From the NCBI RefSeq assembly GCF_006345805.1, contig NW_021824227.1, forward strand, positions 1-19,583: a DNA stretch of 19,583 bases. Reading direction: 5' to 3'. The position numbers and the translations under genes are program-made. The notes under the pieces are model-generated. The model had not been told where the DNA came from. It saw nothing but the letters and a program-made list of their open reading frames with translations, and searched no databases. The DNA is from Octopus sinensis (lineage: Eukaryota). This document shows, in pieces, positions 13,666 through 15,489 of the stretch; position 1 is the first letter of the stretch, and the number at the start of each line of letters is the position of its first letter.

Positions 13666-14070
13666 GATTGATTGCTTATTTAATTGATTGATGACAATAA
13701 AATAGAAGTATCACACTCTTTCCACATAAAAATTCTTTAATATATAAATATATACATACATACAGATACAAATATTTTCAAATAAAAATTTTTAATTGCA
13801 CAAGGCTAATTTAGGGAGCTTGTTATAATGCTGACGGGGAGGAGGGAATTAAATTGAAATAGTTAGGGTCCAGTGGAAACTCTTCATAGATCAAAGCCTC
13901 TCCACAATCCCCACCTCTTTCTGTCTATATCTTTCTCTCTATATGTATCTACCTATTCATCTCTCCCGCTTTAAGCTTTGGATTAGCTCTGATGGTTCAG
14001 CCCTTTGATCGAGGCTATTTTGATTGTGACTATTCTATACTTTTATTAAAAACTAGTATATGGACTAGAG

Positions 14071-15032
14071 CAGTGTTTCTCAACCGGGGCTCATATGGCG
14101 TCTGTAAGGGTCCATATGAGAATTTTTTTAGTGGGGAGGGTTCCACGCAACAGAATATAAAGTAGGGCTCCACAATATTTTAAAGTCCCCAGACAAAATT
14201 TGGGTTTAGATGCATGTATAGGTATGTATTCAAGAAATAGCGAGATTTCTTTTTCTGTATACCAGTCGTTGTCAACCAAGGTTCATATGGCCCTTGAGGA
14301 TCTATATAAGATTTTTTTTGGTGGGGGAGAGGGTCCACGCAGCAAATTAGTAAATTGGAGATCCACAATATTTTAAGGTCTCCTGAAAAATTTTGGCTTT
14401 AGATTTATATATTGGTATGTATTTCAAGAATCAGTTTGATTTTTTTCTAGTATTTAAGATGCTGACAAAGCAAACAGCGACTTAAGCCCTCTCGCCACAA
14501 ATACGACGAGCAAGCTGGATGTCCTTGGGCATGATGGTCTCTCTCTTGGCGTGGATAGCACATAAGTTGGTATCCTCGAAAATACCCACCAAGTAAGCTT
14601 CGCTAGCCTCTTGAAGAACCATCACAGCAGAACTCTGGAAACGAAGATCGGTCTTGAAGTCCTGGGCGATTTCACGGTCAAGTCTCTGGAAAGGAAGCTT
14701 CGTAATGAGAAATTCAGTGGATTTTTGGTAACGTCTGATCTCACGAAGAGCAACGGTACCAGGCCTGTAACGATGAGGTTTTTTCACACCGCCAGTAGCT
14801 GGGGCACTTTTTCTGGCTGCCTTGGTAGCCAGTTGCTTACGTGGAGCCTTTCCACCGGTGGATTTACGAGCAGTTCAACCTACACGAGTCAATGTGTGAA
14901 AAACAAAATAAGAAGTTTGAAAGAAATATCTATAAAGCTAGTTTATAAAGAGCGAATGGCTATGGGAGGGGTCCACCAGAATTTAACGGTAACCAAAGGG
15001 GTCCATAGATAAAAATAGTTTGAGAAACCTTG
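14071..15032. mobile_element. Non-autonomous hAT (Charlie-like) DNA transposon enclosing a histone H3 sequence
   Basis: Left TIR CAGTGTTTCTCAACC (14071-14085). Right TIR GTTTGAGAAACCTTG (15018-15032); its reverse complement CAAGGTTTCTCAAAC matches the left at 12/15. The 8-bp flanks GACTAGAG (14063-14070) and GATTAGGG (15033-15040) match 6/8 with a central TAG. Subterminal GGGTCCA motifs occur in both arms. No transposase is present. Confidence 0.75.
14482..14892 (-). pseudogene. H3: Histone H3 (canonical H3.2-type) pseudogene, intronless
   Basis: Spans 411 bp, exactly 136 codons plus TAA. Residues T6-A135 are colinear with H3 ([39 protein letters not shown]...) with A31, S87-A-V-M90 and S96. 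The start codon reads TTG instead of ATG; codons for residues 1-5 read ACT CGT GTA GGT TGA, with a stop at Q5. Other substitutions are L60F, R63T, V71D, A91V, L103I, V117E and R131C. Confidence 0.96.
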
Positions 15033-15489
15033 GATTAGGGGGTAAAGTTAGTCTCCTATTTCTTGCTGACTGAGCATCGATATATTTGTTAACTGTTAAG
15101 TAATTTTTTGTGTTGTTTTGATATTACTGCTATTTGTTGTTGTTGTTGCTGTTGTTGTTGCTGAGCCCCTGGTCAGGCTCGGGTCGACAAGTTCATTTAT
15201 GTTCAAATGCATATTCCATACATTCCACCCACGACCGCCCACGATAATTTTGTGGCTGCTGCAATTCTACGACTGCACCTGTCTGATGTTTATCCATATT
15301 TTCTTTTTAATCAGTGGTGATACAATTTCAGGTAGATTTTAGCTGCTATATCTAGCAATTTGAATGAGCCTGTAGAGGACACCTCCACCGGATTGTCGAA
15401 AGAGTAATTTGTTAAATAGGAGTGCCATCAAGATTGTTCCCCTCACCTCTTTCTCCCCATCTTTCTCTCTATATGTGTGGTTTGTATGT

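Follow-up and report, generated by a model that had tools for sequence, protein, structure and literature searches.

A histone H3 pseudogene inside a putative SPIN/Charlie-like hAT element of Octopus sinensis

Most documented cases of gene capture by cut-and-paste transposons come from plants, and the capture of histone H3 by elements of the hAT superfamily has so far been reported in fungi. In the Dothideomycete fungi Pseudocercospora fijiensis and Pyrenophora tritici-repentis, histone H3 has undergone hAT-mediated transduplication (PMC6710886), leaving the H3 coding sequence inside a hAT element with 8-bp duplications, and the copies of P. fijiensis have been inactivated. A similar arrangement is found on contig NW_021824227.1 of Octopus sinensis (RefSeq assembly GCF_006345805.1), in a stretch of 19,583 nucleotides (positions 1 to 19,583) that is referred to below as the window. 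Here, what appears to be a decayed hAT element surrounds a copy of histone H3 that is a disabled, solitary pseudogene, and the relative ages of the two lean towards a late entry of H3 into an element that was already in place. The fungal carrier is a complete hAT with H3 at tens or hundreds of copies, proving its mobilisation, whereas the octopus locus is a transposase-less relic resembling a miniature inverted-repeat transposable element (MITE), with a single known copy, in an animal host, and with a cargo inactivated through ordinary decay and not through repeat-induced point mutation (RIP).

Three other described systems are close to this locus. With Pack-TYPE elements, including the Pack-hAT elements of maize, it shares a non-autonomous element with terminal inverted repeats (TIRs), a target site duplication (TSD), no transposase and host coding sequence between the ends. 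Pack-TYPE elements have been described in plants with exon fragments as cargo, whereas the cargo here is a whole intronless coding sequence (CDS); to count as a member, an element must also cluster with at least one related element, and singletons are discarded (PMC8903248). The second comparison is to SPIN/Charlie-like families, among them SPIN_NA1_AC and hAT-N1_AC of Anolis (PMC3014272), which are short non-coding elements with the same TIR 16-mer and an 8-bp TSD whose central TA is flanked by pyrimidines and purines, as in the octopus; in contrast to these families, the left end is here tandemly duplicated and the interior holds host DNA, and the comparison concerns the terminal 16-mer only. 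SPIN and its relatives cluster with the mammalian Charlie elements (PMC3014272), hAT-Charlie elements are part of the repeat content of cephalopods (PMC8967140), and a SPIN-like hAT is present in about 1,000 copies in the snail Biomphalaria (PMC5440852). The type of structure is already known from plant Pack-hAT and fungal hAT-H3 elements, to which the locus would add an animal member. Finally, histone orphons, attributed to Childs et al. 1981, are said to be isolated copies of histone genes that lie apart from the tandem clusters. Like them, the octopus H3 is a single copy away from other core histones; classic orphons keep their own flanks and may be functional, whereas the octopus copy is a disabled one, without the 3' stem-loop and embedded in a transposon.

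Termini, flanks and the duplicated left end

The initial annotation of this DNA had placed imperfect TIRs and a degenerate TSD around the H3 copy, and both were recovered where it had put them. The left terminus CAGTGTTTCTCAACC (14071-14085) and the right terminus CAAGGTTTCTCAAAC (15018-15032, read inward) are identical at 12 of 15 positions, while the octamers that flank them, GACTAGAG and GATTAGGG, agree at six of eight positions and have a central TA in both. Since only 0.52 chance matches to a 15-mer with at most three mismatches are expected across the whole window on both strands, an inverted partner within ~1 kb is improbable by chance (roughly 0.02, by our own arithmetic). For the flanks, our own arithmetic gives a probability of at least six matches in eight of ~0.004 with random bases, or ~0.04 if the TA core is granted.

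The hallmarks of the hAT superfamily are 8-bp duplications and YARNG termini (PMC3014272), and the target consensus of the Buster family is nnnTAnnn (PMC3517528). The termini of the octopus element read CAGTG and CAAGG, both of which satisfy YARNG, and both flanks satisfy nnnTAnnn. SPIN_NA1_AC of Anolis has the TIR CAGTGKTTCTCAACCT and the TSD pattern NYYTARRN (PMC3014272). In the window, this 16-mer is matched only at 14071 (one mismatch), at 14263 (three) and at 15017-15032 on the minus strand (three), against a chance expectation of 0.32, and only 1 of 200 shuffles reached three matches. Compared with NYYTARRN, both flanks contain T4-A5, Y3, R6 and R7, and position 2 is A, not Y. The subterminal motif GGGTCC has seven occurrences in the 19.6-kb window: four are within the 978-bp feature (14108, 14331, 14969 and 14999) and one lies 200 bp upstream of it, an enrichment in the feature with a binomial P of ~2e-4 (own arithmetic). 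No open reading frame (ORF) resembling a transposase was found in the interval, where the sole Pfam match is the histone fold. The Charlie-like class, the GGGTCC motifs and the lack of a transposase had all been proposed in the initial annotation, and they are borne out by the matches of 15/16 and 13/16 to the published SPIN TIR, the YARNG ends and nnnTAnnn flanks, the share of four of the window's seven motifs, and the single Pfam domain. We take 14071-15032 to be a genuine non-autonomous hAT element, now decayed and probably of the SPIN/Charlie kind, the comparison with SPIN covering the terminal 16-mer.

The sequence between the left TIR and H3 had been described as a single left arm, but it consists instead of a tandem duplication of two ~193-bp units (14071-14262 and 14263-14456) that are 76-78% identical and are each opened by a TIR-like 16-mer. 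Tandem repeat detection reports a period of 193, 1.8 copies and 78% matches, and blastn aligns the units at 76.4% identity over 195 columns. The homology between units 1 and 2 stops at about 14453. Unit 2 ends no more than ~3 nt from the unit period, so that the H3 block starts at a unit boundary. No further copy of the unit was detected in the 19.6-kb window. The right arm, compared with the left arm in inverted orientation, gives no alignment beyond the 9-nt TIR core; its best match to the left units is in direct orientation, GGGAGGGGTCCAC..AGAATTTAA, with p ~0.01-0.02 against shuffles in local alignment. Just inside the left TIR, a hairpin at 14090-14120 has a 9-bp stem (CTCATATGG ... CCATATGAG) and a DNA folding energy of -6.6 kcal/mol (z = -2.2), of which unit 2 retains a degraded version only. 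This hairpin is formed by the palindromic core CCATATGG of the subterminal motif, and since the core is palindromic, the orientation of the motif is a weak guide. The position and extent of each feature are given in Table 1.

Two observations concern the DNA upstream of the element. About 200 bp away, the segment 13866-13930 contains GGGTCCA, CTCCACAAT and CTCTTTCTGTCTATA in the same order as the left units; it may be a very degenerate extra unit fragment and was detected by neither blastn nor nhmmer. Farther upstream, a pair of 157-bp direct repeats (12157-12313 and 13304-13460) is 83% identical, with the two copies ~1.1 kb apart.

Table 1. Features of the putative hAT element and of the H3 pseudogene within it (positions in the window)
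Feature	Position	Strand	Remarks
hAT-type element, 962 bp	14071-15032		Delimited by TIRs and flanking octamers; whole feature with flanks 978 bp (14063-15040)
Left copy of putative 8-bp TSD, GACTAGAG	14063-14070		6/8 identical to 15033-15040; central TA
Left TIR, CAGTGTTTCTCAACCG	14071-14086	+	15/16 to SPIN-type TIR CAGTGKTTCTCAACCT; opens with hAT motif YARNG
Left-end unit 1, 192 bp	14071-14262	+	Contains hairpin 14090-14120 and GGGTCC at 14108
Left-end unit 2, tandem copy of unit 1	14263-14456	+	Opens with degenerate TIR CAGTCGTTGTCAACCA, 13/16
Spacer of 25 nt between unit 2 and H3 stop codon	14457-14481	-	May be H3 3' flank or filler
Histone H3 pseudogene, replication-dependent H3.2 type, 411 nt	14482-14892	-	Start TTG at 14890-14892; stop TAA at 14482-14484
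Scrambled 9-nt patch at H3 codons 4-6	14875-14883	-	Reads TCAACCTAC on the + strand
60 nt between H3 start codon and recognisable right subterminal region	14893-14952		May be H3 5' flank/promoter or element interior
Right subterminal region	14953-15016		GGGTCC at 14969 and 14999; GGGAGGGGTCCACCAGAATTTAA shared with both left units, in direct orientation
Right TIR, CAAGGTTTCTCAAACT (inward reading)	15017-15032	-	13/16 to SPIN-type TIR; 12/15 to left TIR
Right copy of putative TSD, GATTAGGG	15033-15040		

The histone H3 pseudogene and its age relative to the element

The H3 copy, on the minus strand, retains an H3 gene's 411-nt length and its frame, with tblastn aligning H3 residues 1-136 to 14892-14485 and Pfam reporting the Histone domain at E = 3e-45. 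The variant residues A31, S87, V89, M90 and S96 point to the replication-dependent type, and the top PDB matches are H3.2. The copy starts with TTG and has ACT as codon 2, and in place of Thr-Lys-Gln its codons 4-6 are GTA GGT TGA, with the in-frame stop TGA at codon 6 (14875-14877); the longest ORF in the region codes for 101 amino acids (aa) from an internal GTG. Downstream, codons 7-136 hold seven replacements, each explained by a single nucleotide (L61F, R64T, V72D, A92V, L104I, V118E and R132C). In total, 12 of the 136 codons have changed, and the copy has neither the ATG-to-stop ORF nor the invariant sequence by which a functional gene would be recognised. The initial annotation had seen a complete H3 coding region of 411 bp, which remains correct for length, frame and the seven replacements in 130 codons, but not for the start, now TTG, nor for the continuity of the frame, broken at codon 6. 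No histone 3' stem-loop of the RF00032 type was found by Rfam, even at E <= 10, and no H4, H2A or H2B is present in the 19.6-kb window, which leaves the surroundings free of other core histones for no less than 14 kb to one side of the copy and 4.7 kb to the other. We read the locus as a fossil and not as a working system, with an H3 copy that makes no histone. Between the start codon and the right subterminal region, the 60-nt segment 14893-14952 has a TATAAA at 50-55 nt upstream of the start, and sequence comparison found no similarity between this segment and the left units.

The patch at codons 4-6 differs from the rest of the copy, as at least seven of its nine bases have changed, against seven point changes across the other 393 nt. 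Read on the + strand together with the adjacent H3 codons (14868-14880), it gives GAGCAGT/TCAACC, which is the left junction of the element, GAGCAGTGTTTCTCAACC, minus five bases, and the patch resembles the TIR core TCAACC. This mimicry may be due to chance or to a short conversion or template-switch tract. Two other explanations were rejected. The right arm could be a third unit that begins at the TIR-like CAGT/TCAACC (14871-14880), yet the likeness is confined to a single 6-mer, and codons 1-3 still agree with H3 at seven of nine bases. A footprint of hAT excision would have added bases, whereas the length of the patch is unchanged.

The ages of cargo and carrier can be compared by their divergence. 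In a neutral simulation of codons 7-136, the seven replacements fit a per-site divergence of ~0.025 (0.01-0.05); the probability of seven or fewer replacements is 0.027 at a divergence of 0.05 and 0.005 at 0.06, and divergences of 0.06 or more are rejected (P <= 0.005). Between the two left units, 22-24% of sites differ, which makes the tandem duplication far older than the time at which H3 was released from selection. With H3 aboard at the last transposition, the TSD would be no older than the decay of H3. The flanking duplication has two mismatches in eight positions, compared with ~0.4 expected if the insertion were no older than that decay, an excess with P ~0.06, or as much as 0.19 if H3 is taken at its upper bound (own arithmetic from the simulation). 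A caveat in the initial annotation, that H3 looks young and the termini and TSD look older, fits the ~0.025 of H3 and the 22-24% between the left units; for the age of the TSD, P is ~0.06-0.19. Overall, the relative ages lean towards H3 having entered an element that was already resident and old over its capture and dispersal by that element.

Possible routes of H3 into the element

The history that we prefer, with moderate confidence, is that of an old resident hAT whose interior was rearranged by break repair and into which H3 was later pasted as filler. A non-autonomous hAT element of the SPIN/Charlie kind would have inserted here long ago, duplicating its 8-bp target, and its interior would have been remodelled in place by faulty repair of double-strand breaks like those produced by attempted excision by a hAT transposase. 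The first event would have been the tandem duplication of the 193-bp left end. Much later, ~0.45-0.5 kb from a replication-dependent H3 gene would have been copied in as filler DNA in the opposite orientation, and this copy would have been dead on arrival or inactivated soon after, with a drift of ~2.5% since. We infer both that H3 arrived at the present locus rather than earlier elsewhere and that break repair, not another route, was its path of entry. Nothing suggests that the element moved again with H3 aboard.

Several points speak against such a history. A single locus dates an insertion poorly, and two mismatches in 16 bases still fit a young insertion at the ~6-19% level. The divergence between the left units may predate the arrival of the element at its present site, and the pseudogene could look younger than it is if it underwent ectopic gene conversion by the functional H3 genes, which are numerous. 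In addition, the arrangement of H3 and arms is assumed to be unique in the source genome, and repair with filler DNA would predict microhomology at the junctions.

The alternative that survives best, although we consider it rather doubtful, is that of a true Pack-hAT formed by transduplication, in which H3 was acquired at another locus and then transposed here aboard the element, so that sister copies may exist. This could have occurred if two neighbouring copies with compatible outer TIRs were mobilised jointly, as a single unit that included the intervening DNA. In structure, the locus agrees with the operational definition: TIRs and a TSD are present, a transposase is absent, and more than 50 bp of the interior match a host CDS. 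The ends around H3 look intact, with ~385 nt undisturbed at the left end and 80-140 nt at the right, and a mutated internal TIR such as that at 14263 is a prediction of the neighbouring-insertion model (PMC8903248); the degenerate internal TIR recalls what that model proposes for Pack-TYPE insertions mobilised together. There are also precedents in the hAT elements of several fungi that captured and amplified histone H3 (PMC6710886) and in the Pack-hAT elements of maize. Against this stand the TSD (two of eight mismatched) and the right TIR (three mismatches), which look older than H3 (~0.025), the derived replacements of H3, which occur in no related predicted protein among the best matches listed, and the window, which holds no second copy of the arms. 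Moreover, the plant pipeline drops singletons as possible false positives (PMC8903248), and one copy is seen here. The Pack-type element put forward in the initial annotation keeps its TIRs, its TSD, its lack of a transposase and its match to a host CDS, while its "full-length H3 gene copy" has turned out to be a disabled pseudogene.

The search for sister copies covered several collections. A protein search with the translation of the pseudogene was run against 5.8 billion proteins, with the 120 best matches listed; among these there was canonical H3 alone, at 95% identity or less, and since all of them stay at this level of canonical H3, none of the 120 best listed proteins has the derived replacements of the octopus copy. 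A composite six-frame query of both arms and the antisense of H3 returned nothing at E <= 10. Exact look-ups of five ORFs in public assemblies (the H3 ORFs of 101 aa and 46 aa, an antisense ORF of 133 aa and two neighbouring ORFs) gave none on record. A metagenome scan for a motif common to both left units yielded 32 loci, and only one of them resembled the query pieces at all, in 23 nt shared with unit 2, no more than chance would give. These negatives speak to collections that do not include the source genome, and they do not show that the arrangement of H3 and arms is unique.

The question of sister copies determines how far the locus reaches beyond itself. It is unlikely that a SPIN/Charlie-like element took up the whole CDS of a replication-dependent H3 and multiplied it across the genome of a mollusc, but if it did, the resulting animal Pack-hAT family would be the counterpart of the fungal hAT-H3 amplifications and would hint at H3 as a recurrent cargo of hAT elements. 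Sister copies, with the same cargo now in an animal, would suggest a mechanistic bias and not coincidence, and a candidate for such a bias is capture from genes that are highly active in S phase, when hAT elements move. The locus itself represents well-delimited host coding DNA nested in an animal non-autonomous hAT element, and it holds a caveat for annotation, as the H3-like match is a pseudogene within a repeat.

We regard it as improbable that the parts of the locus are coincidental neighbours, with an orphon-like solitary H3 pseudogene lying among independent or fragmented pieces of hAT MITEs and outer ends that never belonged to one element. Three points speak for unrelated neighbours: interspersed repeats are dense in the window, the right arm resembles the left units in inverted orientation at the 9-nt TIR core and nowhere else, and neither left unit has a right end of its own. 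Yet the outer flanks agree at 6/8, with the P of ~0.004, or ~0.04 when a shared preference for TA targets is allowed for, the SPIN-type TIR is found nowhere else in the window, and the right arm and the left units have in common the GGGAGGGGTCCAC..AGAAT.TAA block as well as the GGGTCC motifs.

A retrocopy, made by reverse transcription of H3 mRNA by the enzyme of a long interspersed nuclear element (LINE) and inserted into an old MITE, is very improbable. In its favour, the copy consists of little more than coding sequence, a transcript origin was inferred for the fungal hAT-H3 case (PMC6710886), and the block may have a weak direct repeat of 13-14 nt on its two sides (14443-14456 and 14938-14952, identical at 11/14 with one gap). 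Yet that repeat is not significant once the free choice of the right junction is allowed for, the histone 3' stem-loop expected of a copy reaching the mRNA 3' end is missing, and there is no poly(A), the A-run beside the 3' flank being part of unit 2 with the same stretch in unit 1. The H3 copy shows neither the mRNA 3' end or poly(A) nor the flanking target duplications of a processed pseudogene.

Other repeats in the window

Two families of interspersed repeats occur in the window. The first has at least four copies or fragments that are 83-96% identical, located at 1167-1558, 3899-4285 (in minus-strand orientation), 11596-12095 and 17017-17076. With a tRNA-like head, GGCGCAGGAGTGGCTGTGTGGTAAG...GGTTCCGGGTTCA, and an internal microsatellite rich in (TA/TG), it looks like a tRNA-derived short interspersed nuclear element (SINE); ARAGORN and Rfam reported nothing at this family. 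The second family, 74-98% identical, is found at 5588-5731, 6620-6859, 7524-7951, 9317-9922 and 16867-16918; around 7524-7951 and 9317-9922, its copies are in part tandemly arrayed or nested. Its T-arm, GTTCAAATTCCGCCGAGGTCGAC, is tRNA-like, and the family is probably another SINE; tRNA scans of the window were negative. In appearance, the SINE-like repeats resemble those of octopuses.

A decayed relic of a Tc1/mariner-type transposase spans ~5960-7282 on the + strand in several frames, with pieces such as ...NDHDPDRRIDFCEWF... and ...VEFPARFPDFTPANFFFIGY..., and is broken by a copy of the second SINE-like family. A search by shared words gave no match to this relic; in an exhaustive search, its nearest proteins were ~40% identical, some of them with DUF4817, HTH_Tnp_Tc3_2 or DDE_3 domains. 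Runs resembling tri-nucleotide repeats or homopolymers, namely (TTG/CTG)n and T- or A-rich stretches, lie at 8859-9236, 10259-10616, 15134-15163 and 18966-19445 and give rise to long, spurious low-complexity ORFs on both strands, and (TA)n/(TG)n microsatellites are abundant across the window.

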